From assembly GCF_964213995.1 (NCBI RefSeq), contig NC_135825.1, positions 11,842,001 to 11,906,000 of the forward strand: a DNA stretch of 64,000 nucleotides, in the 5' to 3' direction. Source of the DNA: Mustelus asterias. Lineage: Eukaryota. Under the pieces are notes generated by a model, which was given only the letters and a program-made list of their open reading frames with translations, had not been told where the DNA came from and ran no database searches. Shown here piece by piece: positions 10,158 to 64,000 of this stretch. The position numbers and the translations under genes are program-made. Position 1 is the stretch's first letter. Every line of letters begins with the position of its first letter.

Positions 10158-10466
10158 CTACCGATTAACAGTAGCATAAACTGTCATTTGAGAATCTTGC
10201 GGAGTATTGAGTGATGGAGCTGTTTTGTTGGGTTGGCTTTGAACACTGATGGTACTGTAGGTGACTGTGTCCGTGTTGTTAACTGAGTGCCTTTCCACCT
10301 CACCACTCAGTGCTGGGGATTTCTTTTGAAACTGCACTGCTGCATAAGTAATTTTGCTTTCATTATTATTGAACTGGATGTTTCCCTCGCTGTGCGTTCC
10401 TGCGGAGATACTTCGAATGGCATTTATGTTTGCATATACAGTGCTCCCTTCCGCTGCTTCCAGTTG
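10158..10466 (-). CDS. Gene A exon 7, cytoplasmic tail with four tyrosine motifs
   Basis: ttttatattgtag|CAACTG...[20 protein letters not shown]...KITYAAVQF...TVTYSTI...[10 protein letters not shown]. Not in the ORF track because the frame has no early start codon. Confidence 0.9.
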   Translation of the reverse strand, partial: QLEAAEGSTVYANINAIRSISAGTHSEGNIQFNNNESKITYAAVQFQKKSPALSGEVERHSVNNTDTVTYSTISVQSQPNKTAPSLNTPQDSQMTVYATVNR

Positions 10467-13400
10467 CTACAATATAAAAGAAATACATAATCCAATTTAT
10501 TTCTGATGAACTTGAACAGTGATTTGTGCTGTTATGATGAGAAATGTCTTTTTTGATTATTATGTCAGTTTATAAAGCGTTGAAATGTATTTATAGCACA
10601 GAAACAAGCCATTGGCCCAACAGGTCAATGCTGGTGTTATTCTCCTCGATGTGGAGATGCTGGCATTGGACTGGGGTGGGCACAGTAAGAAGTCTCACAA
10701 CACCAGGTTAAAGTCCAACAGGTTTATTTGGTAGCACGAGCTTTCAGAGAATCGCTCCTTCTTCAGGTGAGTGAAGAGTTTGAAGAAGTCTGAAGAAGGA
10801 GCGATACTCCGAAAGCTTGTGCTACCAGATAAACCTGTTGGACTTTAACCTGGCGTTGTGAGACTTCTTACTGTTATTCTCCTCACCAGTCTCCTCCCAT
10901 CCTTCTTCATCTAATCCTGCCAATTTATCTTTGTTCCTTTCTTCCTCATTTGCTAATCCAGCTGCCCCTCCAACAGATTTATGGTATTTGCTTCAACTAT
11001 TCTCTGTGATAATGAAGATTGAAGAGTGGGCAAACATATTGGGTGGGGGGGGGGGATCTTACCGGCTCATCATGGCAGTCAATCGGCATGGCCAGTAAGA
11101 TCGCCCAAGAGGCAAAAAACCAGGTTTGTGCCAAGTTTCTCACCTCTCATGATGTTAGCGGCCCTGTTCTGTTGGGTGCGAAGTTAAGTTTAATATTCAT
11201 GAGCTTATTTTAATATTATTAGTGAGCCTGGGATGCAACCGTCCGGGCGTACTTGCCTTAACCGCCTCACCGGTGGAGGTCCTCGCCGGCGTGTATTACA
11301 TATGCTCCCCAGCAACAGGGATCCGATGTGATGGCCTTGCCAGTGGGACTGGAGGCCATTAAAGCCTCTGGGTGGTTGGGGCAGGTAGTGTCCCTTGGGC
11401 AGTGCCAACTTGGCACTGCCAGACTGGCACTCTCATAGTGCCCACTGCACACCCAGGCACTGGCCACTGGACAGTGCCAAGGGATGAGGCCCAAGGGGAA
11501 GTGCGGGGCCTAAGGGGAGGGGTGGGGCTTGAACGGGAGGGGTGGGGCCTGAACGGGGGGCAAGGCATGGGGAGCTCCATGCTCTGCATCAGGGATTACC
11601 GGGGTGGTGATTTGTGCAGGTGTGGGGTGGGGAACGGGGGGCCAGTGGGTCATGGAGGGAAATTGGGGGCAGTGAACGGCTAGGTGGGATCCTATGTGGC
11701 GATTGGGGGAGTTGCAATCAAGGATGGTGATCAGGCGTATTGCCATTGGGGGATGGGGGGGCGATGTCTGGGGGGGGGGGGGGGGGGGGGGGGGGGGAGT
11801 GCCAGATCCCTAGTGCACTATGTACTCTTGTACACAGTACACTGGGAGATCGGAGCGCAAGCACAATAGCCCCATCTATCAGTCAGCAGCTTGCTACCTG
11901 GCATGAATAGACTGTCCACTCCCCCTATTGGCGAGAATCACAACTAATCTTTTTCTTTCTAAGTGACATGAGATTGCATCTGGGAGCTTGCCCAAAAAAT
12001 GGGCGCAACTCTTTCCTGTTTTCACGCGTGTTCGGCACTTAGAATTTTTTTGTTAAGATTGCCCCCGTTGAGTTTTCAGTTGACGCAGAAAGAATTGCCA
12101 CAAACAGCTGTGGTTCCCTGAGACAGATGTTGTTCATGGACCAAAGATGTACATGAGTTTCCAATTGTTAATACAGTTCCAGAGTCTGATTTCTCATAGC
12201 GAAACTATTATTCCTGGCTATGGTGATGTTGGATATGGTGATAATTTCTGCATCCATCACACCTGTACACCACATTGCTGTAAATTAGCCAAGGCTAAAG
12301 AATTGCTCAGACTTCCCTTTATCTTTTCTAATGATCAGTTGTGGCAAATCGTACCATTACAATTAGCTGAAAACTAGGTAAGCACATGAGGAAGGTGGTG
12401 CCATAGTGGTATTGTCACTGCTCTAGTAATCTAGAGGCTCAAGGTAATGCTGTGGTGGATGCGAGTTCGGATCCCCCCCATTGCAGACGATGAAATTTAA
12501 ATTAAATAATCTGGAATTAAAAATCTAAGGTTGGCCACAAAACCATTGTCGTAAAAAACCCATCTGGTTCATTATTATTATCCTTTAGGGACAGAAACCT
12601 GCTGTCCTTCCCTGGTCTAGCCTACAAGTGACTCCAGACCCACAGTAATGTGGTTGAGTTTTAACTCTCCCCAGGGATGGGCAATAAATGCAGGCCCAGC
12701 TAGTGATGTGCACATCCCATGAATGAATAAAAACAAGAGGGAGAGGAGAAGATGAGGAAATGCTGATAGGGTTAGAGGAATCAGTGAGACTGAATGACCT
12801 GTTTCTGGGTCTATCTCACCCAGTTCCGCAAATTTCCAAACATTGTTCAGAGAATTCATACTTAATATCCTTACCCGATTATCATTTCGAGTCTTGTCTT
12901 TTCGATGAAATTCATTGGCATTTGTATCTGAAAAATTACAATGTTATTGTTGAAAGAACTGTAACAAGGATATTTAATATGCTTAAAATCTCTAAACTGA
13001 TAGTGTCTTGCAGTGTGCGTAACATTAGATTGATCTTCATTCATATGAACTTCATTTGGTTTCCCTATATAGTGCAAAATTGGTTTTGGTTATTTTGCCT
13101 AATGATCAGAAAGGGTGGAGGTAACTTTCACCCGAACCATCTGGCAGAGCAGAAAACCTGCCCGTTATAATCGATTCTGATTTTCATCACATTTATCCCT
13201 ACATGGTGCTCTATCAGATCACTGACCCAAATGTGAAGGTAAAATTCAACCCCTGTCCCCATATGTTTAGGATTTTGCAGGACAAAAATCCTTCAATTCT
13301 ACTCTGAAAAAGAGCTCTTGTTCTGTTGCACTATCAGTGAGAGACCAAACAATACAGGGAAAAATCAGTACCCAATTTGAACTCAAATTGCATTCACTCA

Positions 13401-16400: not shown

Positions 16401-19400
16401 CAAGGTGCTTGAAAAGGACAACCATGGCAGCCTCCAGTGGATGAACAGATAGATACTGTTGCTGTTAGCCAGGTGAGCATGGAAGATCTTAAACAGGTTC
16501 AGTGTGGTGATGATGATTCAAAACAGCTACAGGATGGAGCACACCCTGCTTCTTATGGCAAATGGAAAGATAAGTTCCAACCACAGGATGGGCTTGTTCT
16601 TAAGAATGGACAGTATGTGGTGCCAACCCAAGATCATAATCAAATCATTTACCAATGCCATGATTTTCAGGGTCATTAAGGAGCAGAAACAACCTTGAGA
16701 AAGCTGTAGAACAATTGCTTGGGAATGTTCAAGCTACTCAGATGTCCGCTGCTGTTAAAAATGGGACAAAAAAGAAAGCAGAGTAAGGCTTATTTTGATG
16801 GTAAAGTGAACCCTATAGAGTACAAGGTGGGACAACAGGTTATGCTTCCAATTTACTAACCTGGTACATTATTATCCCCCAGATATTCTGGGCCTCACCC
16901 TATTGTAGATGAAGTTAGTCCATCAGTGTATAAGGTCTTAATGGATTCTGGAAAGACTGGATGATATCATGTTAATCAAATGAAAGCCTATAATGTTCAG
17001 AGTAGTCATCAATATCGTGTGATGCTGGAAGCATATAATCTAAATAATGGCAGTGATATTTGCCAGTTTGATTCTAGTACATTGGATTCATCATCATGAA
17101 CTTTGCATTTAGATAATGAGTCACTAAGTATTTGGGCAGGGAGTTCATCAGATGCTTCATCAGTTCAGTCACAGGATGCAGTAAGATTACGATAGTTACG
17201 AGATGAGGAAAATCTAGTTAATGTGCTAGATGAGACAGAGAAAAGGGATGACGTTGAGGATGATGATGATGAGGAGAATGATGAGGAAGTGAATGTCCAG
17301 GTTACAGGAAAGCAATGTCAGGGTCAGATAGTGGAACAGAAAGTTGAACAGAAAGTTGAACCGGAGGTTGAGCAAGCAATGGAGCCAACAGTTGGGCAGC
17401 TTTAAACAATGAAACGATTCACTCCTGCTCAGCACAGAGCTTAGGAAAAAGCTGTTTCTAATGCCAGGATAAGGTTGTTTCTAATGCCCTCCTTCTGCTT
17501 GATCCCGATTAGTAATCATGATCGTGGTAGGTAGCAATTGCTGCTCGGAACACCTTCCCCCACCATTCCCCCCACCACCACACACACCCGTTCCACCTAC
17601 CCCCCCACCCCACCCCCATCCCCATCCCCACAGCCTCTGCTGTGATCGGGAGCCTGTCTGTTCCAGCCTCTTCCTTTCCCCATGCCTCTGGGACAGGTCC
17701 CTGGGCATTTCTCCTTTTTTTAAACTTTAAACACTGCTCTCTCTTCTCTCCTTTCTAATTATTTTCTTTTAAAAAAACTCAGCAGCAATTTCCTATCTTG
17801 TTTTTTTTTACTTGAGTTCCACTTTCTTTTTAAATCAACATCACAGCTTTTGCTTCTAAGGGCTATTTTCTCTTCACTTTTTCCTTACGGATTTCTAAAC
17901 CTCAGACTGTACTGACCAGCTCATGTTTGCTCTGCATCCATCCCCCAAGGTCTGGGCAAGATCTCAACACATCATTGAGCCTATTTACCCAAAAGCAGGC
18001 ATTCGACTGAGTATCATTTTTCTTCAGACTTCAATTAAAACCAGATACTCACAGGTTGCCTATGTCATCAGAATGCATTTTATCCTCATTGCCAGTGTAA
18101 TAATGCACTCGACAGACTTTGTCAGGAACACAAAGGGTGATTATCAACAAGGAAAAGCTCTATAGAGGCCGGCAGCCTGCCCTGCACATCCCCAGAGTAC
18201 CCCAGCCCCTACCTGTCTACTACATGCCTGTAGTCTGCCTTCTGCCTAAGAGACAGCTATACCATAGAATCCCTGCAGTGCAGAAAGAGGCCATTTGGCC
18301 TCACTTGCCCTCAGTCCCAATTTGTCCCTCAAGACAGGTGACCCTTGTGCTGCCCTTAAAGGGACAATCGCCGCAAGGGTCAAATAATTATGGGTTGTGC
18401 ATCAAGATTTTTAAAAAAGGATTAAAATATGAGCAGCCCCAGAGCTCGTGAAAACACAGTCACTCCCACACTTACATCACGTGACCCCCCAGGTCTTCCA
18501 TTTTGAACACATTTGAATTAGATGTGCAGAATACTACAATCGTAGGATTCCAAACAACTATATATTCTTTATTTTTTGCGACAAATTACCGACATGGAAT
18601 GAAATGATTGAAGGGAAATAGAATCTCACCCTTGTTGATTTTCTTCAGGTACAACAGTAGAGAAACAGCGAATACAGTAAGAATGGCCCCCAGCACAGCG
18701 AGCACAATGTAAGTCAGACTGTGATACAGAGAATAGGAAAGGGTCAGTGCAGGTTCACAATTGATTCGTGGCCATTTAGTTAAATTAAAGTACGTTTTAT
18801 ACTTGTAGAACATCTTTGAAGATTTCAGGACATCTCGAAACACTTTATAAGGTGGAGGAACTTTAAGGTGTAGTTACTGCTGTAATGTAGGAAATGTGGC
18901 AGACAATTTGCATACAGCATGGTCGCTGAAATAGAAATCAGAGTGACCAGATAATCTGTTCTTTTTAAAAATAAGGGATAATTATTCACCTAGCCATCAG
19001 GGAAATGTCCTTTGTTTCTTCAAAGATTATCACAAGGTTTGTTATATCCACCTGAGGGGACAAAGGGGAAGCAAAGGGCTAATGGTATTATCGCTAAACT
19101 ATTAATCCAGAAACTCGGTTAATGTTCTGGGGATCCAGGTTCGAATCCTGCCATGGCAGATGGTGGAATTTGAATTCAATAAAAAATATCTGGAATTAAG
19201 AATCTACAGATAACCATGAAACCATTGTCGATTGTCGGAAAAACCCATTTGGTTCAAAGCAACAAGTATTCTGCTTTGGATACGGTTGAGGGGGACGACA
19301 TACCAGTGGTGAGCCGCAGTGAGAGGATCTCCAGCACTGTATCCGTCTCTGTGGCTCGGGAGAGTAAGGGGGAGAGCGGGAGGGCAATAGTTATTGGGGA

Positions 19401-22400: not shown

Positions 22401-25400
22401 AGATTTACCAGGATGCTGCCTGGTTTGGAGGGTAGGTCTTATGAGGAAAGGTTGAGGGAGCTAGGGCTGTTCTCTCTGGAGTGGAGGAGGCTGAGGGGAG
22501 ACTTAATAGAGGTTTATAAAATGATGAAGGGAAAAAATAGAGTGAACGTTCAAAGACTATTTCCTCGGGTGGATGGAGCTATTACAAGGGGGCATAATTA
22601 TAGGGTTCATGGTGGGAGATATAGGAAGGGTATCCGAGGTAGGTTCTTTACGCAGAGAGTGTTGGGGTGTGGAATGGACTGCCTGCAGTGATAGTGGAGT
22701 CAGACACTTTAGGAACATTTAAGCGGTTATTGGATAGGCACATGGAGCACACCAGGATGATAGGGAGTGGGATAGCTTGATCTTGGTTTCAGATAAAGCT
22801 CGGCACCACATCGTGGGCCGAAGGGCCTGTTCTGTGCTGTACTGTTCTATGTTCTATGTTCACTAATGTCCTTTAGGGAAGGAAATCTGCCATCCTTACC
22901 TGGTCTGGCCTACATGTGACTCCAGAGCCACAGCAATCTGGTTGACTCTCAGCTGCCCTTGGGCAAGTAGGGATGGGCAATAAATGCTGGCCAGCTAGCG
23001 ATGCCTCTGTCCCACAAATGAATAAATAGAAATGGGGCCTAGGTTTAACATCGCCTCCTCAAGGTGACACCTCTGGCAGCACAGCCCTCTCTCTGTACTG
23101 CACTGGAGTATCTGCCCAGATAATGGGGGGAATTCTCCGGCCTCCCAGCTGTGTGTTTCTCGGGGGCAGGAGGTGGCGCGCTGTTCACTGGCGGCGGGAT
23201 TCTGCAGTCCCACCGCTGTCAATGGGATTTTCCATTGATGTCACCCCACGCTGCTTCTGGGTGGGGGGGGTGGGGGGTGAGGTGGGGAGCTGGGGAAGGG
23301 GGTGAGATTTTGTTGGTACTCAAAAGGACAGGAACTTTGACTTGATTAGTGGGACGGGAAATTCTGATCAGGCAATGATAATGTCAGAGACATGCTTGTG
23401 GCGTATCAAGCCTCACGTGTTAGCCTGTGATGAGTTCCTACTTGGGATACATTTGCACTCTGCGAATACTCAATCGTGTCAAACATTTCATTAATTATGT
23501 CCTACTTTCTGGACTCCTGACTGTGGTGGTGGTGGGGGGAGGTGGTTTGGGACAGTCAGTCAAGGTAAAAATATAAGGAGCCTAAAGGTCTGTGTCAGTA
23601 CTCTCCAGATGTGTATCCGTCCCAGGGTATTGTCAGACAGAGCTCTTCCAAGGCTTTGGGTTTCTCATTGAGTGTCCTCAGACAATGTCCTATACAATGC
23701 ATGGGCCAGCTTAGCCTGCAAGTTCAGCCATGCCGCACAGAGTCGCAACTACAACAGTGGACACTGACATAAACATTCAATAAAGAGTCGACAAAAAAGT
23801 CGCAATACTGTTCCTTCCGCAATAAAGGAAATGTCCCTAAACCTCCTGTCCCCATCAAGGTGAGGTGTGCCAGCAATTTCGCTCTGTGCTAATAAAGTCT
23901 CAACAAATAATGATGACACACACACAGGAATAAAATGAAAACAATGCAATGTGGACTATTTCCAGGTGAGATTTAATTTTCACCCGTGCTACCTTTGTGC
24001 TCTTTGTTGATGGCAAGGGAGTTGGGCAGGAAATTTGTGGATGTGATGTACAGCCACTCTGTCTGGTCTGCTTGTAGATACAGCATCATCAACCGATAGT
24101 GGTTTCACCAATGTAAAGCTTTCTCTTGCTATTAAATCACAAGTGTTTTGCACGCTCTCCCTAGCACATGAAATTTTAACCGCAATTGAATGGGGAAATG
24201 TAAAAAGAGAGAGACAGTTCCGATTACGACATTGGGAATGAAATCCTGTTGACAAAATTCCGGCTGTTGTATTTTTCTTATGGAAACTGTACCAATCAAT
24301 CCAGCAGCAATGAGAACATTGTACCTTGTGGATCCTGAAGTTTGGTCTTGATTCTCAGTGGGATATATATTTGTATTCATGGATACTGTTGAAGAATCTT
24401 GACAAGAATATTCAGGTCCTGTTAAGACAGGGAAATAATGTTCAGATTCACCTCATTTTCACTGCTCGCTAATCAAGAGAGCATCATTGTCAACTGGAAC
24501 CTACAGAAAGAGCCTGGACGATATAATGGATTTGGATGATTTAATTTCTCTCTTTCCTCTAGCAGTTAGAACTCATGATGACACCTGGCTGAGGCTCATT
24601 CTTATGATAATTTCTGTTTCTTTCCCACATCTGAGAGTGGTGCTACAGAGTTACTGCTGGAGCAGTTAAAGGGTGGACTACAATCCAGATATATCCTTTT
24701 GTACCGTGTGAAAACATAGGCCCAGATTTTCTCCTTGATGGTGAGCTTTACTGTTGTGGCAAAAATCCTTTGGAGAGTAAGGTACCCCTTCAATAGGGTC
24801 CCAGCATACCTTCGGGGAGGTTCGGCACCATTTAGGATTGCTAAAGTTAAAAATGATGATACACTTTTTATGGCTCAAATGCATTGGAACTGTCAAGCTG
24901 TCAAAGAACTGTCCAGCAGTCAGTTGGCATAGGCCAGCATAGCTAGGGCATAGGGAGTGTTTGGGGGGCCAGGGTGAGGGCTGGAGGGCTGCTTTTTGGT
25001 TTAAACTATTTTTCTATTTGCTTAAACACAAATGCCTTCCACCCAGCCCTCCTCCTCATCCAGCAATTTTCACAACAATTCTGGGCAGAGGCTGCAGGTG
25101 GTCACTTTTGAAGGTCAGGTTTGCAGAGCCACCCCCCCCGCCACTCCGTCTGCTGAGCCCTTGCCATTCTCCTGTGTCTGCACACCTGGCCCAGAAGCAA
25201 AAATCCAGGCCATAAAGTAAAGTTCCAGGCAGCGAGCTGGCCTCTGATCCCAATGGAAAATGTATTTCTGGGAACCCAGCAACCATGATCCTACCCTGGA
25301 AAGATGTCCTTGAGGGAAAAGGAATATAAGTTGGGCATTGACTGCAAAAAGAAATCAAGCAGTTGATGTTTGTGTTAAAAGAATGCTTCTGTTAAAAGAA

Positions 25401-42291: not shown

Positions 42292-42580
42292 TGGCTGCTT
42301 TTCAGAGACAGTGGGAAGTGTAGACAGAGTCAATGAATGGGAGATGGTTTGTGTGATGGACTGGGCTATGATCACAACCCTTTGTAGTTTCTTGTGGTCT
42401 TGGTCAGAGCAAGAGTCATACCAAGCTCTGATGCATCTGGATAGTATGCTTTCTATGTTGCATCTGGGAAAATTGGTGAGTGTTGTCGTGGACATGCTGA
42501 ATTTCCTTAGCCTTTTGAGAAAGTAAAGACGTTAGTGTGCTTCCTTAACTATAGCATCGGCGTGGAGGGGCCAGGACAGG
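42292..42580 (-). mobile_element. Rex1/Babar-like LINE fragment
   Basis: MSTTTLTNFPRCNIESILSRCIRAWYDSCS, homologous to 27700-27900. Confidence 0.75.
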
Positions 42581-51400: not shown

Positions 51401-54400
51401 AAATGGAACCTCAGTATTTGGGAGGATGGATTTGGGTGTTTTAACTATCTCCCTCTCTGGTAGCAAGGAGAGAGGCTGATGACATGTACCGGAGACCCAT
51501 TTTGCTGCTGATTTCTTATCCATCCCACATCTGAGAGTTGTTGGTGCAGCAATGGTGAGTTTCTGTGCCGTATGTTCCCCTTTCCGCCTCGGCTGTTTTC
51601 CTGGCAGTCGGATTTCAATCTGTCCACCATACCATGACCTCATCACTGCGTTACGCCGGGGGGCCATATTTAAACTGCAGCCATGTGCGCACCTCAGTGA
51701 ATCCAATCCACTGAAGACATTGGCCCTGTATTGCTGTGTGTGCTGAACTCCATTGCTGATGCCAGAGTTGGCAGCGCAGGTGCAGACGTTACCCTAGCCC
51801 GTCCTGCAAGACTGCGCCGTTCATTTGAACCATGTCGGAGACTGATCCCAACCTGAATGATAACATTGCAAAGGGGGTGTGAGTGCTTCCACCAGTGATT
51901 GTTCCATGGCGAGGATTCACAAGGAGATTGTACCACTGGTCCAGTCATCCAAATGTTCTAGAATCATAGAAACCCTACAGTGTAGAAAGAGGCCATTCGG
52001 CCCATCGAGTCTACACCGACCACAATGCCACCCAGGCCCTACCCCCATATCCCTACATATTTACCCGCTAATCCCTCTAACCTACCCATCTCAAGACACT
52101 AAGGGGCAATTTTAGCATGGCCAATCAACCTAACCCGCACATCTTTGGACTGTGGGAGGAAACCGGAGCACCCGGAGGAAACCCACGCAGACACGAGGAG
52201 GATGTGCAAACTCCACACAGACAGTGACCCAAGCCGGGAATCGAACCCAGGTCCCTGGAGCTGTGAAGCAGCAGTGCTAACCTCTGTGCTACCGTGCCGC
52301 CCCCCCCCAAAACATTTATTAATTTGCAGTCTCTGCCTGAGGGGTAAAAGATTCAGGAGCGTTTGACGGCCCGTTCGTGCCTCTGGATTCCTTGAGTGGA
52401 AAGATCAGCTAAAGGCCCGACTCCGAGCATAAAGTTAAAGTTTTAATCACAAGTAGGCTTATATTAACAGCGCAATGAAGTTACTGTAAAAATCCCCTAG
52501 TCACCACATTCCGGCGCCTGTTTGGGTACATTGAGGGAGAAGTTAGCATGGCCAATACATCGAACCAGGATGTCTTTCGGACTGTGGGGGGAAACCAAAG
52601 CACCCGGAGGAAACCCACGCAGACACGGGGAGAACGTGCAGACTCCACACAGAGAGTGACCCAATCCGGGAATTGAACCCTGGTCCGTGGAGCTGTGAGG
52701 CAGCTGTGCTAACCACTGTACCACCGTGCATGTCAATGGAGCTGCGATGAACTGTCTGAGCTGTGGAATAATGCTCACTTTCACAGAATTATAGAATCCC
52801 TACTGAAAGTGGGGGCATGTGTTGGTCATTATATCTGAAAAATTAGTTTAAAACTCGAGTATATGTTTACTATTTCCACGATTTACTAAAAGGGTTTGAA
52901 AATTCCTCAGTTCCGTCTGTGAGAGGCAAGCTGTTAGCTGCAAGGAGGCACCCCAAGGGTAAAATCAGCTAGGGTCTAATTCGTAGGCAGGACGTTACAA
53001 GTGTTAGATCTCAAGGTCAATAAAAACAACCTGGCATTGTTCTCCCAATTGATGTGACAACCAAATGGTGTAAGATAACATAATGAGGCAACACTATTTA
53101 CAGCTTAAACATAAGGATTTGTTTGTCTGCCAAACCTCTCTAACTTGAGAGAATTCATCTAATATTAGGGGCCTTGGACATGGGGAGGATAATTGATATC
53201 CCCAAGTCAGACACGAGTTGTTATGTTAAGGACAAATTGTCGCCAGTAGTAAATCAGATGAGACAGCATGTATCAGCATTGAGTATAGAAATTGGCAGGT
53301 GATGCTGCAGCTGTACAGAAACTTAGTTAGGCCTCATTTAGAATATAGAACAGTACAGCACAGTACAGGCCCTTCGGCCCTCGATGTTGTGCGGGGCTTT
53401 GTCCAAAACTAAGAACCTTGTCAGTTCCACTTGTTTTTCACATTCATGTCTATCATTAACAGTCAGCGGTCCCTGACCTCACTTGAAGAGCTATTGCAGC
53501 TCTTCCAGGAGGATTCCAGGCCTCTAGAAATAACACCAGCAATTTTACACCTTTTCCTCAAATGTCTACAGCCCATGAGTCATGACTTGGAAATCCTAGT
53601 GATGAAAAGTTTGAAGCCAGCTACACCTTTCCACTTGCAACTGGCTCCACGGACCGCGAATATGCAAAGTACAACCTGTTCTGCTCGCACTGCTACTCCC
53701 GTGGCACAGTGGTTAGCGCTGCTGCCTCACAGCACCAGGAACCTGTGTTCAATTCCTGGCTCGGGTCACTGTCTGTGTGGAGTCTGCACGTTCTCCCCGT
53801 GTCTGCGTGGATTTCTTCCGGGTGCTCTGGTTTCCTTCCACAGCCCAAAAGATGTGCTGGTTAGATGTATTGGCCATGCTAAATTCTCCCTCAGTGTACC
53901 CAAACAGGCGCTGGAGTGTGGAGACTCGGGGATTTTAACATTGTGCTGCTAATTTAAGCTTGCTTGTGTCAATGATAAATATACTTTTAAACTTTAAACT
54001 CCCAGTGGAAATGGTGGGTGTTGGGTTCGGGAGCTGGGCTTCTGGGGTCAGGGTGCCCGTGCCATTTTAGCTTTACAGTATTCACTCTTTAATCTCCATT
54101 GCCATGCTTTTTTCCTCATAACTAAAATGTCTCAGCCCAGGTTTTTCTTAAGTTCAATTCTTCCAGGTTAGATGTGAGAGGTTACTTTGCACAATTTCAT
54201 TTGTTAGGATTGTTTTTTAATCATGCAATGTGAGCATCACTGGTAAAGTAAGAATTTGTCTCCCAGCTCTAATTGCTTTTAAACTTGCCCGGCCATTTCA
54301 GAGGATATTTAAGCCGCAATCACATTGCTGTTGGTTTGAAGTCACGTGTCGGCCAGACCAGGTGAAAATGACAGATTTCAAGAACAAAAAACAAATAAAA

Positions 54401-57400
54401 TTACTGCACAGGAACAGGCCCTTCGGCCCTCCAAGCCTGCACCGACCATGCTGCCCGACTGAACTAAAACCCCCTACCCTTCCGGGGACCATATCCCTCT
54501 ACTCCCAACCTATTCATGTTTTTGTCTGGCCCCCCCGTAAAAGTCACCATCATATCTGCTTCCACCACCTCCCTTGGCAATGCGTTCCAGGCACCCACCA
54601 CCTTCTGTGTAAAAGATTTGCCTTCTACATTTCCTTTAAACCTTGCCCCTCGCACCTTAAGCCTGTGCCCCTCGTAATTGATTCTTCCTCCTTGGGAAAA
54701 AGCTTCTGACTACTCACTCTGTCCATGCACCTCATAATCTTGCAGATTGCTATCAGGTCACCCCACAACCTTTGTCGTTCCAGTGAGAACAAACAAAGTT
54801 TCTCCAACCTCTCCTCATAGCTATTTCTTACCCTAAAGGGCATTAGTGAACAATTGTTGACATCTTCATGGTTTTCATTACTGATCATAGAACCATAGAA
54901 TCCTACAGTGCAGAAGGAGGCCATTCAGCCCATCGAGTCTGCACTGACCACAATCCCACCCAGGCCCGATCCCCATAACACCATGCATTTACCCTAGCTA
55001 GTTCCCCTGACACTAAGGGGGAATTTAGCATGGCCAATCAACCTAACCTGCACATCTTTGGACTGTGGGAGGAAACCGGAGCACCCGGAGGAAACCCACG
55101 CAGACACGGGGAGAATGTACAAACTCCACACAGGCTGTGGCCCAAGCCGGGAATTGAACCCGGGTCTCTGGCGCCGTGAGGCAGCAGTGCTAACCACTGT
55201 GCCACCGTGCCGCCCATTTGGTGATATTGGCTTTCAATTCCGGATTTATTAATTAATTGAATTTCAATTCCATCAGCTGCCGCGGTGGGATTTGAACCCA
55301 TGCCCCGAGAGCATTAGCCTGGGCCTCTGGATTGCTAGACCAGTGGCATTAGCGCAATGCACTTTCACTCAGGGCAGGCTCAGTCGGCTGAACGACTGGT
55401 TTGTGGTGCAGGGCGATGCCAACAGCACAGGTCCAATTCCCGTACCGGCTGAGGTTATTCATGAAGGCCCCACCTTCTCAACCTTGTCCCTCGCCTGAGG
55501 TGTGGTGACCCTCAGGTTAAGTCACCAGCGGTCAGGTCTCCTCCTTAAAGGAGGAGCCTCTGGTCATCTGGGACTTTACCTTTGCATTATCTCTGAAATG
55601 GGCATTTAGATTTATGCTGCTCAGCAATTAAAAGCTATTTTCATTTCATGGGATGATTGAGTTGCAATATTTATTCATCTTCTGGCAATACTTTTTGATC
55701 CTGTCATTTTCCATGAAAAATGAAAATCAATGATTTTTCAGATTGATAAATAAAATTAACTGGCAACCAGTATGGATGGACATTAATCATAAAAATCATT
55801 AACCCCATTGTTAGTTGAAAGTAACACTTACCAATGCTGCTCTGTATCACATAACTGCAATTCCCAGTTGGATCGAAGACCAACACATTAACCATTTCAC
55901 TGGATTTTTCTCCCTGGTTATTTGAGGCTGTGCAGTAATATTGATGATGTTGCTGTGTGAAGGATTGACAATGTAGATCCAGTTTATTGGTGTCAGAGAT
56001 CTTTGAATCTTCAGACGGGGTCTTTTCATACCATGTGTACTGAATGGGAAGTGATCCCTGGACAGACTCACAGGAGACGGACACTGAGCCCCCAGAACAT
56101 GAGGCATTTGGTGGTGATAGAAATTTAAGTTCAGGAACAGACATTGGTTCTGTGGGGAAGAAACAGACATTCAGACACTTGAGTGAACATCTAAGAATCA
56201 AACAATCTGTGATTTTTATCCCTTCAGCATCTCAGCCAGGGGCGGCCATGTTGGAATCTCACCAGCACATCCACGTCTCCACGGGGGCGAATGCTTAACT
56301 GGGGTTTGTACGTGGGAAGTGTGTTTGTGCTGTCCAGAAAGTTAGAAATACCCAGGAAAGTCGAGTTTGTGCTGAATTTAACAGCAAAATCTGATCAGAA
56401 CTCTTCCAGAATTGAGAGTCTGGCTGGAGTTTCAGCAGAAAAGTCTGTCGTGTAAGATTTGGAATTGGTGGGAGTGTGAGTTCGGGGGTCAGTAGCGAGG
56501 AGGGAATCAGGGAGGCTTTATTGGTTGGGGCAGAGTTAGCCAATCATGGGGGTGGGGGGGGGCGGGGGGGCGGTGATTGTACAATATATTTGCCTGGGGG
56601 CCAGGGTGAAGCACTCCTGTGCCCCAGGGACCCGAATCCGTGTTGGAAAAGCTGCTGGACCCATCAAGTCCCACCGCCATGAACACATTGGAGAGTTTGG
56701 TCCTGTACTGCTGTGTGTGCTGAACTCCATTGCTGCTGCCCTAGTTGGCAGCTCAGGTGCAGACATTCCCCTAGCCCGTCCTGCAAGTCTGCACCCTTCG
56801 CTTGAACCATGAGGCAGACTAACCCAAACCTGAATGTGAAACATGTCGTGCTGAGGTCATGTTGGTGAGGGTGGTATATTCACCGTGTGGGGATGATCCC
56901 AATGGCAGGCATGATGATAAGGTGCAAATGGATTAAAATTACGTTCTCGCCATTTGACTAAACCAGACTGATTTTTAACCATTCCGCCATATTTTCCGTT
57001 CACGATGCCAAGCGCGCCCATTACCAACTCCGCACAGTTCCTCTTCTGGCCACTGCTGTGTTGTTGCTGCAGGAACTGGATAGTTGTCAGCCAATCAGAT
57101 TAGACTCTCCAAGGCAGACTCCCTCCGGAGCGAGGGGCGGATCTCTCACCCAATAAGAATCAGCACACATACGAGCGTTAAATGACATCACGCTATCCCA
57201 AAAATTCAGGCCCCCGGATCCTGTTAAATTCTGTCGATTGATTCTATTTTATTATATTTGAGGGAATTATACCAGAAGGTACAACTGGCTCTTAACTATT
57301 TGTCCTTTTGTTTTAATCTAAAAACAAACACCTGACAGTGTGACAAGTTGGTCAGTCCATGAATTGGGTTTGTGGGAGGCAGATTTCCCCAACTTTGCCC

Positions 57401-60400
57401 TCTGAGGGGAGCTGGTGGCGTGGTGGTATTGTCACTGATCTAGTAATCCAAAAAACCCAGGGTAATGCTCTGGGGACCTGAGTTCGAATCCTGGCACGGC
57501 AGATGAATTTGAATTCACTAAAAATCTGGAATAAAAAGTCTAATGATGACCAAGGAACAATTGTCATAAAAACCCAACTGGTTCACTAATGCCCTTTAGA
57601 GAAGGAAATCTGCCATCCTTCCCTTATCTGGCCTACATGTGACTCCAGATCCACAGCAATGTGGTTGAATCTTAAAATGCCCTCAGGGATGCTACTAATA
57701 AATGTTGGCCCAGCCAGTGATGCGCACATCCCATGAATCAATGAAAAAACAAGCTGCCAGACTCTGCACTGCAGTGGATCCTCGGGATACCGGAGCTGTC
57801 AATGTTTCCTTCCAGAGAAAACCATGGCCTGAATTTTTCGCTCATCATGTGTGTGCACTCAGCGAGTCTGGACGCGGGTACGAAACCTCAGCCCCGAAGC
57901 GCAGTTCCACACTGGCTGTCCAATGAATGGGGGAAGAGCCACTGTGGAGCTGTCTCAGGGAGCTGTTGACCTGTGAAAAATATCAATGTTAAAACGATAC
58001 CGCGAGTGTCAGGGCAGCACGATCACACACACAGCTTAGGCCCCAGACACATTTCTTACTTTAATATGAACCCTGACCTTTCATTCCGCCCTGGATCGAG
58101 GTTGCAGCTAAAATGTAAAGGTCACCTGGCCAATTGGCCCACCCGCCAACTGTAAAGGCAGACGGGCAACTTAAAGTCCTGGACAATTGGTGTTTAATGA
58201 ATTTAAATTGACTTTTGCATGGCTGGCAGCCGCACTTCCGACTTGCGCATGTGCCTGGCGACTGAAATATTGAGAGAAGGCATATTGCCGTCGGGGTGTG
58301 ATTTTACCCACATTCGGGTAGGGCACACGCCTGATCTTTATACATAAAATTCTGGCCATTGATCAGAGATTTCAGTCAAGAGTAATAAAGATAATCACTG
58401 AGAATAACGCACCGTTAGATATTTGTAGGTTTACGTTATACAATGGATCGAGACCGGATGCTTCAATTCCACAGCTGTACCATCCTGCATCTCCTGAGCG
58501 AAGATCCTTCATAGTGACAACAAATACTCTTCGTGACTTGTTATCTGTGATTGATATTCTTCCATTTTGCCAATTTGTCTTTGCTACAACATCACATTGG
58601 CGATTCCAGCCGCGACACCAATATTTCACGTGTGACCGGTACCACACACCATAGTGACAATCGATTGTGATCGATCTTCCCACAATTCCTCTCACTTCCT
58701 CTTTTGCCCACAATGCACCTGAAACTGAGGAGACAACATTTCAGGAATTGAACAGGGAATAATTGCTTCATTCAAACAGACCCATTCTAATGAGTTAAAT
58801 TCCATGCAGCTTGTGATGAAAATAAACATTAATATAGACATTTATCACAGTCTCAGAGTGTCAAAAGCATTTCTGTCAATTATTAATTTAAAAAAATATT
58901 TGATGTATTTTCCTGAACCAATGACAGGGGCTGGGGGAGCAGGGATGGGGGGCGGGGGGGCCTGGAAATTGGGGTTCTGCCTCACATTGTGGGCCTTCAC
59001 TCCAGAGTGTGATTGTGAGACATCATCAAGAGGTTTCAGACCCAGAAACAAACCTAATTGACGGGTCCAACTTGCAGTTAGTTGGGGAGCAGCCCGGAGG
59101 AGATGACAGGAGCAAAGAGGTCCTTGATCTGACCTGAGAGGTGGTGTAGGCAGTAGGGATGGGATGTGACTCACACATTAAATCCTGGCAGGAGGGGGGT
59201 TTTCAGATCTTGGGTGGGTTTGGGATTTCAGGAGGTGAAGATTGCCGACCTCGGTGATGGTGCACGGGATTGGTGGCCTTGGAGGATGGCTGGAGGTCTT
59301 AGGTAACAATTTAGATGCCTGCTGAGAAGGAGACTGGAAACCTGGGGAGGTTTGGATGACTTAGGGGAAATGGAGGCCTGGGTTTGGGCCATGGGTGGCC
59401 TGGGGGGACATGAGACCCCTTGGAAGGATGGCAATGGAACGACGGGTGTATGGACAATTTGAAAGCATGTTTTGTTGGAGGTGATGCAGATTTCATGGGG
59501 AGGTCAGGTGACAAATTGTAATGATTGGGGCGGTGAATGGGTTCGCATCAAGTGGGAGTTGGGCAGTGTAACAAATCTGCGGAGGCAGAAGTCCCTTCAC
59601 CAAAATCCCTTTATTTACAATTCCAACAGCAGTACACAGGGTGCTTTCTGTCAGCAGTCTACCTTCGGGAGTGCCAGAGTGATGCGCAATTAAATCACTC
59701 GGGAGGCTAGATTGTACCTGGGAAATAAAGGCTTTTATTACTGACAAGAATGGAGCACACTATACACAATACAATTCCAGACTAAAGGGTCACCAGGCAG
59801 TGCAGTGACCTTTATACTTCCCCTGGTAGGCGAAGCCAACTGGAGTGTACCACAGAACAATATCAACAGGTAGAACAGCCCAACCCTAACACCAACAGTA
59901 ACTACAGTAACATATCTACAAACACCCATAGTGCTGACCATCCATGGCTCAGCACTCATAGTGGTAACCAACTATGGTTCACCACATTCACCCCTCCTTT
60001 AAAACAAAGGCCGGCGGGGCTAAAAAAAACAGAACAACTGTTCATATATTCACAAGTTCAGTCGTATTGGAGGACCGCGGTAACGTCGGTTCTGGTAACC
60101 GTGGTGACCTTCTCTCCAAGGCGGTGTCCAGTGACTCCTCCAGTTCCTCACGGACAGGTGGACCACGAGGTGGCGACAATCTGCTGGACTCGAGCACGCC
60201 TCGAGGTGGTGACAATCTCCTGGACTCAGGCAAGCTGTACACGGGAGTAAGAGGATTAAGTGGTGGTCCCGATACTGCCCGCGCCGTGTCAGGAGGGGAG
60301 ATAAGGGTCGGGGGGTCCCTAACTAGGGGTGTGGAAGCGACTGCGGTTTCCAAGTCCCCTGCAGGCGCCAGATCTCTAATAGAGACCATGTCTTCTCGCC

Positions 60401-63400
60401 CGTCAGGATATGCCACATAGGCATATTGAGGGTTGGCGTGGAGGAGATGGACCTGTTCAACCAAAGGGTCGGACTTGCGGGTCCTAACATGCCGCCGCAG
60501 GAGGACAGGTCCTGAGTGCGTCAACCAAGACGGTAATGAGGTCCCAGAGGAAGAGTTCCTAGGGAAGGAAAACATCCTCTCATGTGGAGTAGCGTTGGTT
60601 GCCGTACACAGGAGTGAGCAGATAGAATGGAGCGCATCAGAGAGTACCTCTTGCCAACAGGAGACTGGAAGACTTTTAGACCTCAATGCCAGTAAGACAG
60701 CCTTCCAGACTGTAGCATTTTAATCATGCAATGTGAGCATCACTGGTAAAGTAAGAATTTGTCTCCCAGCTCTAATTGCTTTTAAACTTGCCCGGCCATT
60801 TCAGAGGATATTTAAGCCGCAATCACATTGCTGTTGGTTTGAAGTCACGTGTCGGCCAGACCAGGTGAAAATGACAGATTTCAAGAACAAAAAACAAATA
60901 AAATTACTGCACAGGACAGGCTCTTCGGCCCTCCAAGCCTGCACCGACCATGCTGCCCGACTGAACTAAAACCCCCCACCCTTCCGGGGACCATATCCCT
61001 CTACTCCCAACCTATTCATGTTTTTGTCTGGCCCCCCGTAAAAGTCACCATCATATCTGCTTCCACTATCTCCCTTGGCAATGCGTTCCGGGCACCCACC
61101 ACCTTCTGTGTAAAAGATTTGCCTTCTACATTTCCTTTAAACCTTGCCCCTCGCACCTTAAGCCTGTGCCCCTCGCAATTGATTCTTCCTCCTTGGGAAA
61201 AAGCTTCTGACTACTCACTCTGTCCATGCACCTCATAATCTTGCAGACTGCTATCAGGTCACCCCACAACCTTTGTCGTTCCAGTGAGAACAAACAAAGT
61301 TTCTCCAACCTCTCCTCATAGCTATTTCTTACCCTAAAGGGCATTAGTGAACAATTGTTGACATCTTCATGGTTTTCATTACTGATCATAGAACCATAGA
61401 ATCCTACAGTGCAGAAGGAGGCCATTCAGCCCATCGAGTCTGCACTGACCACAATCCCACCCAGGCCCGATCCCCATAACACCATGCATTTACCCTAGCT
61501 AGTTCCCCTGACACTAAGGGGGAATTTAGCATGGCCAATCAACCTAACCTGCACATCTTTGGACTGTGGGAGGAAACCGGAGCACCCGGAGGAAACCCAC
61601 GCAGACACGGGGAGAATGTACAAACTCCACACAGGCTGTGGCCCAAGCCGGGAATTGAACCCGGGTCCCTGGCGCCGTGAGGCAGCAGTGCTAACCACTG
61701 TGCCACCGTGCCGCCCATTTGGTGATATTGGCTTTCAATTCCGGATTTATTAATTAATTGAATTTCAATTCCATCAGCTGCCGCGGTGGGATTTGAACCC
61801 ATGCCCCGAGAGCATTAGCCTGGGCCTCTGGATTGCTAGACCAGTGGCATTAGCGCAATGCACTTTCACTCAGGGCAGGCTCAGTTGTCTGAACGACTGG
61901 TTTGTGGTGCAGGGCGATGCCAACAGCACAGGTCCAATTCCCGTACCGGCTGAGGTTATTCATGAAGGCCCCACCTTCTCAACCTTGTCCCTCGCCTGAG
62001 GTGTGGTGACCCTCAGGTTAAGTCACCAGCGGTCAGGTCTCCTCCTTAAAGGAGGAGCCTCTGGTCATCTGGGACTTTACCTTTGCATTATCTCTGAAAT
62101 GGGCATTTAGATTTATGCTGCTCAGCAATTAAAAGCTATTTTCATTTCATGGGATGATTGAGTTGCAATATTTATTCATCTTCTGGCGATACTTTTTGAT
62201 CCTGTCATTTTCCATGAAAAATGAAAATCAATGATTTTTCAGATTGACAAAAAAAAATAACTGGCAACCAGTATGGATGGACATTAATCATAAAAATTAT
62301 TAACCCCATTGTTAGTTGAAAGAAACACTTACCAATGCTGCTCTGTATCACATAACTGCAATTCCCAGTTGTATCGAAGACCAACACATTAACCATTTCA
62401 CTGGATTTTTCTCCCTGGTTATTTGAGGCTGTGCAGTAATATTGATGATGTTGCTGTTTGAAGGATTGACAATGTAGATCCAGTTTATTGGTGTCAGAGA
62501 TCTTTGAATCTTCAGGCGGGGTCTTTTCATACCATGTGTACTGAATGGGAAGTGATCCCTGGACAGACTCACAGGAGACGGACACTGAGCCCCCAGAACA
62601 TGAGGCATTTGGTGGTGATAGAAATTTAAGTTCAGGAACAGACATTGGTTCTGTGGGGAAGAAACAGACATTCAGACACTTGAGTGAACATCTAAGAATC
62701 AAACAATCTGTGATTTTTATCCCTTCAGCATCTCAGCCAGGGGCGGCCATGTTGGAATCTCACCAGCACATCCACGTCTCCACGGGGGCGAATGCTTAAC
62801 TGGGGTTTGTACGTGGGAAGTGTGTTTGTGCTGTCCAGAAAGTTAGAAATACCCAGGAAAGTCGAGTTTGTGCTGAATTTAACAGCAAAATCTGACCAGA
62901 ACTCTTCCAGAATTGAGAGTCTGGCTGGAGTTTGAGCAGAAAAGTCTGTTGTGTAAGATTTGGAATTGGTGGGAGTGTGAGTTCGGGGGACAGTAGCGAG
63001 GAGGGAATCAGGGAGGCTTTATTGGTTGGGGCAGAGTTGGCCAATCATGGGGGTGGGGGGGGCGGGGGGGCGGTGATTGTACAATATATTTGCCTGGGGG
63101 CCAGGGTGAAGCACTCCTGTGCCCCTGGGACCTGAATCCGTGTTGGAAAAGCTGCTGGACCCATCAAATCCCACCGCCATGAACACATTGGGTCCAGAGT
63201 TTGGTCCTGTACTGCTGTGTTTGCTGAACTCCATTGCTGCTGCCCTAGTTGGCAGCTCAGGTGCAGACATTCCCCTAGCCCATCCTGCACGTCTGCACCC
63301 TTCGCTTGAACCATGAGGCAGACTAACCCAAACCTGAATGTGAATCATGTTGTGCTGAGGTCATGTTGGTGAGGGTAGTATATTCACCGTGTGGGGATGA

Positions 63401-64000
63401 TCCCAATGGCAGGCATGATGATAAGGTGCAAATGGATTAAAATTACGTTCTCGCCATTTGACTAAACCAGACTGATTTTTAACCATTCCGCCATATTTTC
63501 CGTTCACGATGCCAAGCGCGCCCATTACCAACTCCGCACAGTTCCTCTTCTGGCCACTGCTGTGTTGTTGCTGCAGGAACTGGATAGTTGTCAGCCAATC
63601 AGATTAGACTCTCCAAGGCAGACTCCCTCCGGAGCGAGGGGCGGATCTCTCACCCAATAAGAATCAGCACACATACGAGCGTTAAATGACATCACGCTAT
63701 CCCAAAAATTCAGGCCCCCGGATCCTGTTAAATTCTGTCGATTGATTCTATTTTATTATATTTGAGGGAATTATACCAGAAGGTACAACTGGCTCTTAAC
63801 TATTTGTCCTTTTGTTTTAATCTAAAAACAAACACCTGACAGTGTGACAAGTTGGTCAGTCCATGAATTGGGTTTGTGGGAGGCAGATTTCCCCAACTTT
63901 GCCCTCTGAGGGGAGCTGGTGGCGTGGTGGTATTGTCACTGATCTAGTAATCCAAAAAACCCAGGGTAATGCTCTGGGGACCTGAGTTCGAATCCTGGCA
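45325..64000 (-). CDS. Gene B (5'-partial, multi-exon): activating-type paralogue, [leader, V outside window]-C2-V-C2-stalk-TM(Arg)-short tail
   Basis: Exons 62650-62333, 58724-58413, 56149-55832, 51329-51233, 49403-49313 and tentatively 45411-45325. GT-AG and phase compatible. No leader exon found in the window. Confidence 0.78.
45960..46242 (+). mobile_element. Penelope-like element 3' end with degenerate hammerhead
   Basis: CTGGCGAAGGAGCAGCGCTCCGAAAGCC...ACCAAATAAACCTG-TGGACTTTAACCTGG, the same terminal sequence as the hairpin elements. Confidence 0.65.
46872..47606 (+). mobile_element. Solo LTR
   Basis: TG...CA ends, exact CATC target-site duplication, internal AATAAA. It interrupts a MITE-like repeat. 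Confidence 0.8.
49313..49403 (-). CDS. Gene B transmembrane exon with charged Arg (NxxR)
   Basis: ccattttgctcag|TTACATT...TCTAAG|gtaggt. SYIIWNVIRWGLFALLVICAVTVTWYPGKSK. Confidence 0.87.
49557..49775 (+). mobile_element. HE1-type V-SINE, 3'-truncated and fused to a Gypsy remnant
   Basis: Head and V-domain present, then an abrupt switch to integrase codons. Confidence 0.8.
49776..50458 (+). mobile_element. Gypsy-like LTR retrotransposon 3' remnant: integrase C-terminus, PPT and 3' LTR (50204-50458)
   Basis: VQLLHANPQYAYVQYLDGREDTVSIRDLAP. Purine tract AAACAGGGGGTGAA, then TG...CA LTR containing TATAAA and AATAAA. Confidence 0.85.
51233..51329 (-). CDS. Gene B mucin-like stalk exon
   Basis: ctcaatag|GACCTAAA...AGTAAAAG|gtac, 97 nt. 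GPKYTCEDFTTISTTISPTTLTTSSGSTFVSK. Confidence 0.85.
51958..52303 (-). mobile_element. HE1-type V-SINE
   Basis: Reverse-complement match to the other copies. Confidence 0.88.
54380..54825 (-). mobile_element. CR1/HER1 3' fragment (duplicated at ~60883-61326)
   Basis: [24 protein letters not shown] plus CR1 tail. Confidence 0.8.
54886..55215 (-). mobile_element. HE1-type V-SINE (duplicated at ~61387-61716)
   Basis: Reverse-complement match to the other copies. Confidence 0.88.
55832..56149 (-). CDS. Gene B IgC2 exon
   Basis: cccacag|AACCAATG...AGCATTG|gtaagt. [41 protein letters not shown]...[10 protein letters not shown]. Confidence 0.92.
58413..58724 (-). CDS. Gene B IgV exon (CD300/pIgR type)
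   Basis: ctcctcag|TTTCAGGTGCATTGTGG...TCTAACG|gtgcgt, 312 nt. VSGALWAKEEVRGIVGRSITIDCHY...KYWCRGWNRQC...DAGWYSCGI. Confidence 0.92.
59680..60718 (-). mobile_element. Gypsy-like LTR retrotransposon 3' remnant: integrase, PPT and 3' LTR (59680-59986), cut at the duplication junction
   Basis: WQEVLSDALHSICSLLCTATNATPHERMF...LLHANPQYAYVAYPDGRED. PPT AAAGGAGGGGTGAA; TG...CA LTR. Confidence 0.88.
60718..64000. repeat. Recent tandem duplication, copy 2 (truncated by window end), of ~54215-57496
   Basis: Near-identical colinear sequence at offset ~6501-6504, including the CR1 fragment, HE1 SINE and C2 exon. Confidence 0.95.
62333..62650 (-). CDS. Gene B duplicated IgC2 exon (upstream copy)
   Basis: 318 nt with intact acceptor and donor; three nucleotide differences from 55832-56149. 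Confidence 0.85.

Follow-up and report, generated by a model that had tools for sequence, protein, structure and literature searches.

The 64,000 nucleotides (nt) of Mustelus asterias DNA analysed here (contig NC_135825.1, positions 11,842,001 to 11,906,000; the window) very probably contain two adjacent chondrichthyan genes of the modular domain immune-type receptor (MDIR) family, an inhibitory gene A and an activating gene B, the latter probably with the ectodomain V'-C2'-V-C2. Both genes lie on the minus strand in a head-to-tail arrangement, with gene A running from 40302 to 10158 and gene B as its upstream neighbour. The V, C2 and stalk exons have equal phases in the two genes (1-1, 1-1 and 1-2). 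Gene A ends in an uncharged transmembrane (TM) segment and a tail with motifs of ITIM type (immunoreceptor tyrosine-based inhibitory motif), and gene B has a TM segment with an arginine.

The window was scanned with an open reading frame (ORF) listing, Pfam and self-blastn, and there are no runs of N across its 64,000 nt. On the minus strand, ORFs and Pfam matches placed V-set exons at approximately 35.5-35.9 and 58.4-58.7 kb, and three C2-type immunoglobulin (Ig) exons at approximately 31.7-32.0, 55.8-56.1 and 62.3-62.7 kb. Each exon was then read from the DNA, with the small exons placed by tblastn of natural homologues (Table 1). All searches were made with single exons, and the length of gene A is the sum of its exon lengths.

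Gene models at the locus

Gene A forms a complete seven-exon model, in which a leader, a V domain, a C2 domain, a stalk, an uncharged TM segment, a small cytoplasmic exon and a tyrosine tail are joined across introns that all have AG/GT ends, in phases 1, 1, 1, 2, 1 and 0. The exons total 1224 nt, equal to 407 codons and a stop, and predict a type I membrane protein that is complete at 407 amino acids; single-unit inhibitory homologues have 408-418. The V exon finds pIgR and CMRF35-like molecule 1 among solved structures, and the C2 exon has Pfam Ig_3/Ig_2 matches under the cut-off. The acceptor of the V exon was set at 35867 on the N-termini of homologues, and a candidate at 35861 was dropped. 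The hydrophobic core of the TM segment contains no charged residue, and its exon is matched in tblastn by the inhibitory proteins P0109 of Heptranchias (E 8.8e-6) and P0210 of Mustelus asterias (E 4e-8). The small cytoplasmic exon was located with cytoplasmic segments of homologues searched by tblastn against the 8.3 kb interval, where P0162 and P0193 matched at E 4e-6 and 4e-5 respectively; the homologues back 12927-12875, and candidates at 13210/13198-13158 were dropped.

The tail exon of gene A, which P0109 matches at E 2.8e-25 in tblastn, encodes TVYANI, ITYAAV, VTYSTI and TVYATV, with the tyrosines at exon residues 11, 41, 70 and 97 and a spacing of 27-30 residues between motifs. ITYAAV and VTYSTI agree with the general ITIM consensus [S/I/V/L]xYxx[I/V/L]; TVYANI and TVYATV are of the immunoreceptor tyrosine-based switch motif (ITSM) type, TxYxx[IV].

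Gene B is represented in the window by V, C2, stalk and TM exons and a candidate terminal exon. Its V exon is 80-81% identical to V domains of the activating Mustelus protein P0160 (tblastn). The TM segment reads YIIWNVIRWGLFALLVICAVTVTW and holds a single arginine, in its outer third, where WNVIRW places an NxxR at the N-terminal end of the TM. In tblastn the TM exon is matched by P0078, an activating protein of Scyliorhinus, at E 1.7e-11 and by P0160 at E 1.3e-9. Approximately 230 nt 3' of this exon the DNA encodes ..KLESDVGHSAL.., which is like the family tail ..ESD/E..HSA... Splicing from the strong donor at 49313 (AAG/gtaggt) to the acceptor at 49080 gives the tail NQTLAIQPSSLLHHQ followed by a stop; a weaker donor at 49309 gives V-ESDVGHSALKPAPP...ICPK and a stop ((E)SDVGHSALKPAPP...ICPK), in a frame that resembles the family tail. 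A weaker candidate terminal exon lies further downstream, and neither candidate region is a copy of the other. Every tail option is short and lacks an ITIM. No convincing leader for gene B was found in the window upstream of 58724 by a family-type regular expression, by a scan for an ATG with a hydrophobic stretch and a phase-1 donor, or by blastn-short with the gene A leader region; the sole family-type leader in the window, at 40302, serves gene A.

Coordinates and alignments agree with an earlier sequence-only reading of the window, which had described two head-to-tail minus-strand genes with common V, C2 and stalk exons, the same phases and homologous intron flanks. The homology of the flanks covers 35502-35929 with 58369-58786 around the V exons (73%), 31619-32145 with 55753-56281 around the C2 exons (82%) and 24382-24641 with 51293-51541 around the stalk exons (69%). 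That reading had also taken the TM and tail exons to be unrelated, and no homology between them could be detected with tblastn or against shuffled sequences. The gene A TM and tail have no second copy in the window by tblastn, no remnant of the other gene's TM or tail exon was found in either gene, and a comparison of the two TM exons, each with flanks of 120 nt, gave nothing beyond chance matches of 7-9 nt, the exon alignment score being equalled by 7 of 500 shuffles. Likewise, the neutral TM and four tyrosine motifs that it had assigned to gene A are present in the exon sequences and the motif scan, as are the arginine TM and the lack of an ITIM in gene B. When 150 family representatives were used in tblastn, they matched only the exons listed here and, on the plus strand, retroelement sequence.

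Table 1. Predicted exons of genes A and B, the additional C2' exon and the two copies of the tandem duplication. Positions are those of the window.
Feature	Positions	Strand	Length and phase	Basis and remarks
Gene A exon 1, leader	40266..40302	-	37 nt; phase 1	ATG and signal peptide, donor G/gtgagt; tblastn of homologue leaders
Gene A exon 2, V-set, CD300/pIgR type	35544..35867	-	324 nt; phase 1-1	Pfam V-set E 2.1e-12
Gene A exon 3, C2 (FCRL-like)	31699..32016	-	318 nt; phase 1-1	homologue tblastn
Gene A exon 4, stalk	24325..24418	-	94 nt; phase 1 to 2	alignment with gene B stalk and upstream intron
Gene A exon 5, uncharged TM	18630..18718	-	89 nt; phase 2 to 1	hydrophobicity scan
Gene A exon 6, small cytoplasmic	12875..12927	-	53 nt; phase 1 to 0	tblastn
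Gene A exon 7, tail	10158..10466	-	309 nt including stop	motif scan and ORF
Gene B V-set	58413..58724	-	312 nt; phase 1-1	Pfam V-set E 9.7e-9; solved-structure matches
Gene B C2	55832..56149	-	318 nt; phase 1-1	solved-structure match to Fc receptor-like protein 5
Gene B stalk, (G)PKYTCEDFTTISTTISPTTLTTSSGSTFVSK	51233..51329	-	97 nt; phase 1 to 2	
Gene B TM, (S)YIIWNVIRWGLFALLVICAVTVTWYPGKSK	49313..49403	-	91 nt; phase 2 to 0	hydrophobicity scan
Gene B candidate terminal exon	48977..49080	-		E 6.7 (not significant) in a search with 24 activating tails as profile
Gene B weaker candidate terminal exon (..SQHSLNVTLTK, stop)	47422..47484	-		motif-guided scan (47484/47463); fourth in profile ranking, E 5.4
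C2' exon (copy of gene B C2)	62333..62650	-	phase 1-1	splice to downstream V possible
Duplication copy 1	54215..57496			self-blastn; contains gene B C2 exon
Duplication copy 2	60718..64000			self-blastn; reaches window end; contains C2'

In both genes a conserved pair of cysteines lies close to the membrane, the first encoded where the C2 exon ends and the second where the stalk exon begins. In gene A these are found in 31699-31760 (..NDCRYV..) and 24390-24418 (..EYSCQ..), and in gene B in 55832-55890 (..GNCSYV..) and 51300-51329 (..KYTCE..). Of the 256 relatives that were fetched, 112 have a C-x(10-17)-C motif when it is defined loosely. The cysteines may form a small disulfide loop in the stalk or an interchain bond.

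Membership of the MDIR family

The V and C2 exons of the window have homologues at E of about 1e-25 to 1e-52, and a full-library HMMER search with the gene A V exon returned 2220 proteins at E up to 0.001. Single-unit matches are elasmobranch RefSeq models that bear the names pIgR-like, CXADR-like, FCRL5-like or uncharacterized. When the inhibitory protein P0109 of Heptranchias was used as query, 124 proteins from sharks, rays and the chimaera Callorhinchus passed E 1e-10, and MDIR2, MDIR3 and MDIR5 of the skate Rostroraja eglanteria were retrieved at E 5e-101 to 4e-185. These three skate proteins match the V and C2 exons of the window in tblastn at E 1e-23 to 3e-39; MDIR2 and MDIR3 also match the gene A tail exon (E 2e-5 and 0.012), and MDIR5 has a weak match to the gene B TM exon (E 0.023). 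MDIR3, with 701 amino acids, is arranged as V-V-C2-V-C2 with a tyrosine tail. Full-length homologues include inhibitory proteins from Heptranchias (P0109), Heterodontus (P0178), Scyliorhinus (P0192) and the skate (MDIR2, P0217), and activating proteins from Scyliorhinus (P0078), Amblyraja (P0123), Mustelus (P0160) and the skate (MDIR5, P0186). Both forms are represented by RefSeq models among sharks and rays, and the inhibitory form also in the chimaera; the relatives carry between one and four V modules and up to three C2 modules.

Comparison with solved structures identifies the two domain types. For both V exons the best match is pIgR, whose domains together give E 4e-47 and 3e-46; CMRF35-like molecule 1 (CD300f) is found at E 1e-17 and 1e-19 and the CMRF35-H antigen at E 7e-11 to 3e-13. 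Weaker matches are TREM2, TLT-1 and a chain that bears the title NK cell activating receptor. With the C2 exon, Fc receptor-like protein 5 was matched at E 1.8e-40 over six stretches and FCRL4 at E 2e-5. On the basis of these matches, the ectodomain has the layout of the MDIRs, in which an FCRL-like C2 domain comes after a V domain of the CD300/pIgR type.

An excerpt of the published work on the MDIRs describes them as a multigene family with activating and inhibitory forms (PMC3031540). The window genes resemble the named skate MDIRs in sequence, draw on variable numbers of two Ig module types (V and C2 exons of phase 1-1, with an extra C2') and include both types, with ITIM-type motifs in gene A and an Arg-TM in gene B. 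The sequence-only reading had called them MDIR/CD300-like paired receptors, to be compared with skate MDIRs, CD300, pIgR and FCRL. In that comparison the three skate MDIRs match exon by exon and the V domains are of the CD300/pIgR type, so that MDIR membership and the similarity of V to CD300 stand. CD300 proper, defined by a single V ectodomain, does not describe the genes, as a C2 domain follows V in both; the strict sense of pairing also falls away, since the V domains of A and B are 55% identical. A literature search on shark, CD300 and ITIM gave nothing on the MDIR family among the papers listed. The original MDIR paper (Immunogenetics 2006) reportedly did not class MDIR5 as activating.

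Some automatic models of such clusters join several genes or domain units. The Mustelus RefSeq model P0001 (1254 amino acids) chains many V-C2 units without a TM, and the Hemiscyllium model P0018 fuses two complete receptors. Because of models like these, automatic annotation of such clusters is unreliable, and domain counts need support from complementary DNA (cDNA).

Sharks and rays share the two conserved signalling modules, and conservation of the inhibitory tail extends to the chimaera. The gene A tail exon is matched at a domain E up to 1e-3 by 41 of the 256 fetched proteins, all of which keep Tyr41; Tyr11 is kept in 34 of the 41 and Tyr70 in 35, and Tyr97 is kept in 24, the remaining 17 proteins ending before that position. 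The TM pattern W-x-[VIL]-x-R-W was found in 41 stretches from 40 proteins of sharks and rays. The W, R and W of this set are fixed by the search pattern; the residues that follow, (L/V)-L-F-x-L-L, were not forced by it and are nearly invariant from sharks to rays. A homology search for the TM module in other receptor families, with residues 556-611 of P0160, returned only P0160 itself, short queries being weak in this index.

Signalling, the upstream extent of gene B and alternative explanations

On engagement of gene A, Src-family kinases would be expected to phosphorylate the tyrosines of its tail, and tandem-SH2 phosphatases of the SHP-1/SHP-2 type would then bind and damp activating signals. 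This is the general mode of action of ITIM and ITSM receptors, and the motif spacing of the gene A tail suits tandem-SH2 binding. In gene B the TM arginine would pair with an acidic TM residue of an adaptor that carries an immunoreceptor tyrosine-based activation motif (ITAM), and engagement would activate the cell. By analogy with other receptors FcR-gamma is the likelier adaptor, with DAP12 as the alternative. Excerpts from two sources report that TM segments with an N-terminal NxxR associate with FcR-gamma in mammals, birds and Xenopus; the receptors concerned include LILRA2, PIR-A, NKp46, GPVI, OSCAR and FcalphaR, and for Xenopus XFL2 and XFL1.7 the association was found by co-expression (PMC2413239, PMC4536121). 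Our literature search on adaptors in cartilaginous fish gave nothing specific. As the earlier reading had held, the ligands of these receptors cannot be read from the sequence.

Several points weigh against an inhibitory gene A paired with an activating gene B of V'-C2'-V-C2 type. Both genes are predicted models, and the distal V' exon and the leader of gene B are placed outside the window. Sequencing runs matched to 48800-58799 included none recorded as RNA; 16 runs, guessed to be RNA, shared 0.05-0.08 of the words of this interval, and four from one organism, of unstated type, held 0.25-0.73 and look like genomic DNA. The profile of 24 activating tails gave no significant match among 270 ORF pieces (best E 1.8; E 6.7 for the piece at 49093), and the longer reading of the gene B tail holds one YxxL (RLYPQL). 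In the sequences compared, NxxR is a feature of gene B and its Mustelus relative and not of the MDIR family: among the 41 Arg-TM stretches, the residue three before the arginine is K 20 times, D 9 times and N twice. Given this variation, the assignment to FcR-gamma depends chiefly on the arginine and where it lies. The divergence of the V domains also means that a shared ligand is not implied for A and B. Finally, the tandem duplication from which the additional C2' exon derives could be an artefact of assembly, for example an uncollapsed haplotype.

This duplication, found by self-blastn, has a period of 6503 nt, and its copies are 98.78% identical in an alignment of 3286 columns that contains 33 mismatches and 7 gap positions. 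The C2' exon differs from the gene B C2 exon at 3 of 318 nt, all of them non-synonymous (S/P, T/K and P/T), and approximately 1.2% of the flanking positions differ. The duplication is a recent one, of a phase 1-1 V-C2 exon pair. Given that the window holds no leader for gene B, that all Ig exons are of phase 1-1 and that C2' lies upstream, gene B probably extends upstream as V'-C2'-V-C2; its start most likely lies past the window end, and its full order would be V'-C2'-V-C2-stalk-TM. Were the copies instead two haplotypes that the assembly had placed one after the other, gene B would have the simple structure leader-V-C2-stalk-TM, with its leader just past the window. The near identity of the copies and the fact that the second runs off the window would fit this explanation, as would the distance of 4.4 kb between leader and V exon in gene A, since an equal distance above the gene B V exon falls in the duplicated copy. 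We nevertheless consider an artefact improbable: the window has no N runs and no gap separates the copies, their 1.2% divergence is made up of a number of mismatches and gap positions that is high for alleles, and multi-module relatives such as skate MDIR5 (V-C2-V-C2) and Mustelus P0160 (V-C2-V-V-C2) are common. A 214-codon ORF of retroelement-like appearance at 60042-60686 on the minus strand adjoins the duplication junction at 60717/60718, and could mark sequence that mediated the duplication.

Even with gene B extended upstream as V'-C2'-V-C2, its Arg-TM form might work without an ITAM adaptor, as a decoy, a co-receptor or a partner of some other membrane protein, and the variability of the N of NxxR across the family is in keeping with this. 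The near-invariant, unforced L/V-L-F-x-L-L, however, points to a conserved intramembrane partner, and this type of TM is linked to FcR-gamma in an excerpt of the literature (PMC2413239); we therefore regard an adaptor-free gene B as quite improbable and retain the ITAM-coupled form.

One or both loci might also be young, unexpressed pseudogenes in a cluster of fast turnover, with reading frames that are fortuitous or newly released from selection. In favour of this, the cluster is plainly still changing, no leader for gene B was found in the window, and the terminal exon of that gene has no clean family-type reading from the strong donor. Set against this are seven exons of gene A and five in-window exons of gene B that are all open, with AG/GT sites and consistent phases, and the retention of the conserved cysteines and tryptophan, the Arg-TM motif and the tyrosine motifs, which make decay very improbable. 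That A and B form one transcription unit, giving inhibitory and activating isoforms through alternative sets of 3' exons, is extremely improbable: read-through splicing from B to A would be in frame, with all Ig exons in phase 1-1, and some RefSeq relatives do fuse neighbouring units (P0018, P0001), but an exon with the ATG and signal peptide of gene A stands at 40302, in agreement with homologue N-termini, the stalk, TM and every candidate tail exon and stop of gene B lie upstream of that leader, and single-unit homologues of 304-418 amino acids exist for each form.

The remaining sequence of the locus is rich in repeats. An element resembling a long interspersed nuclear element lies antisense within the stalk-to-TM intron of gene A (19954-22691, plus strand), with ORFs that match the Pfam families Exo_endo_phos (E 5e-23) and RVT_1 (E 3e-32), and a second RVT_1 fragment is found at 27146-27601 on the plus strand. 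A dispersed repeat of approximately 330 nt, resembling a short interspersed nuclear element, occurs in both orientations in copies that are mutually 75-94% identical, for example at 9734-10064, 14523-14852, 30085-30425, 33526-33846 and 35097-35436, with further copies at 41971-42292, 51959-52302, 54886-55216 and 61387-61717. It occupies much of the intron and intergenic DNA and is the source of many spurious ORFs.

Re-assortment of signalling modules and comparison with known systems

Separate trees were built for the V and C2 domains, taking the membrane-proximal domain of each type from every protein. Proteins were typed as activating or inhibitory by regular expression, MDIR2 by hand; 13 typed proteins without a matched species code (nearly all of them without a C2 match) and the isoforms P0151 and P0153 were left out. 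On the V tree of 57 rows the signalling label changes 16 times, with at least 11 changes forced by well-supported branches, against a mean of 19 for shuffled labels, and between 45 and 52 of 500 shuffles gave a number as low. The C2 tree, with 62 labelled rows, shows 14 changes, of which again at least 11 are forced by well-supported branches; here the mean for shuffled labels is 20.9, and 0 to 2 of 500 shuffles were as low. A 100/99 branch in the V tree divides sharks and chimaera from batoids. Well-supported sister pairs of one activating and one inhibitory protein from the same species occur in Hypanus (P0167/P0225), Amblyraja (P0123/P0166), the skate (MDIR5/MDIR3) and Heptranchias (P0155/P0109). 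This pattern is as would be expected from repeated recombination or homogenisation of ectodomain exons relative to signalling exons, a process that the trees support.

The V domains of A and B are 55% identical (57 of 103 residues) and their C2 domains 80% (82 of 103), and the two V domains fall in different parts of the tree. V(B) is sister to that of the activating Mustelus protein P0160 (100/96), and V(A) belongs to a well-supported set of nine rows from several shark orders, of which six are inhibitory and three activating. Judged by these sequences, A and B are neighbours of opposite predicted sign from different ectodomain lineages and not a recently split pair. The locus corresponds to paired receptors in the broad sense, its two neighbours being paralogues that have homologous ectodomain exons but opposite predicted signalling, and not in the strict sense of near-identical ectodomains with opposite signalling modules. 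The suggestion that the two genes had diverged by exchanging their signalling modules consequently holds for the family, with at least 11 changes in each tree; the different V lineages do not show a recent swap between A and B themselves. One-to-one orthology of A or B with the skate MDIRs, against which the sequence-only reading had called for per-domain trees, was not seen in the V tree.

Taken together, the locus is a tidy shark example of a family described from skate and already represented in RefSeq under generic names, and not a new kind of system. It provides an exon-level, hand-checked model of inhibitory and activating MDIR genes side by side in a shark, and a corrected identity for relatives named pIgR-like, FCRL5-like and CXADR-like. 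Of more interest is how two ancient signalling cassettes, though conserved, have been shuffled repeatedly relative to the ectodomains, together with the fresh duplication of an exon pair. The locus also offers a reasonable place from which to ask when coupling to ITAM adaptors and inhibition through ITIMs were first joined to CD300/pIgR-type domains. One tentative and rather doubtful idea is that the MDIR cluster retains an ancestral combination of CD300/pIgR-type V, FCRL-type C2 and FcR-gamma-type Arg TM that was later split among families, with its modules being ancient cassettes re-dealt at least 11 times and the 6.5 kb duplication a fresh example. If the Arg-TM exon were truly homologous to the tetrapod NxxR TM exon, FcR-gamma coupling would predate the split of cartilaginous and bony vertebrates.

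Among known systems, the FCRL proteins provide the best solved relative of the window C2 exon, Fc receptor-like protein 5; they are without a CD300-type V domain, and NxxR proper is rare in the MDIRs (2 of 41 stretches). The best summed match of both V exons is pIgR, every domain of which aligns and which is the source of most automatic names of the homologues. It is a chain of V-like domains, whereas the window genes alternate V and C2 and add ITIM-type or Arg-TM modules. The V domains of mammalian CD300 (CMRF35-like) proteins are related to those of the window, and abstracts on CD300 describe a clustered family of activating and inhibitory members. In the window genes C2 follows V and the charged TM residue is arginine; CD300 proteins typically have a single V and are not known to contain a C2, and their activating members typically carry Lys or Glu in the TM.

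The skate MDIRs resemble the window genes more closely. MDIR5 (P0186, 501 amino acids) consists of V-C2-V-C2, a stalk, an Arg-TM (SYISWKVGRW) and a short tail, which is the architecture that gene B would have with C2' and a distal V included by splicing; it differs in having KxxR instead of NxxR, in a TM exon that is 42% identical over 43 amino acids, and in belonging to the batoid clade. MDIR2 (P0217, 416 amino acids) shares with gene A a leader, V, C2, a stalk with the cysteine pair, an uncharged TM, a small basic cytoplasmic segment and a tyrosine tail, and by tblastn is 50-58% identical to the window in V, 54-61% in C2 and 35% in the tail (E 2e-5), although it lies on the batoid side of the V tree and has arginine at the first tyrosine position. 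The nearest relatives found are two computed RefSeq models from Mustelus asterias with generic names (pIgR-like, uncharacterized), the activating P0160 (611 amino acids, V-C2-V-V-C2) and the inhibitory, partial P0210. P0160 is 74-81% identical to gene B in V and 81-82% in C2 and likewise has the TM sequence FIWNVIRWGLF, and the TM of P0210 is 74% identical to that of gene A.

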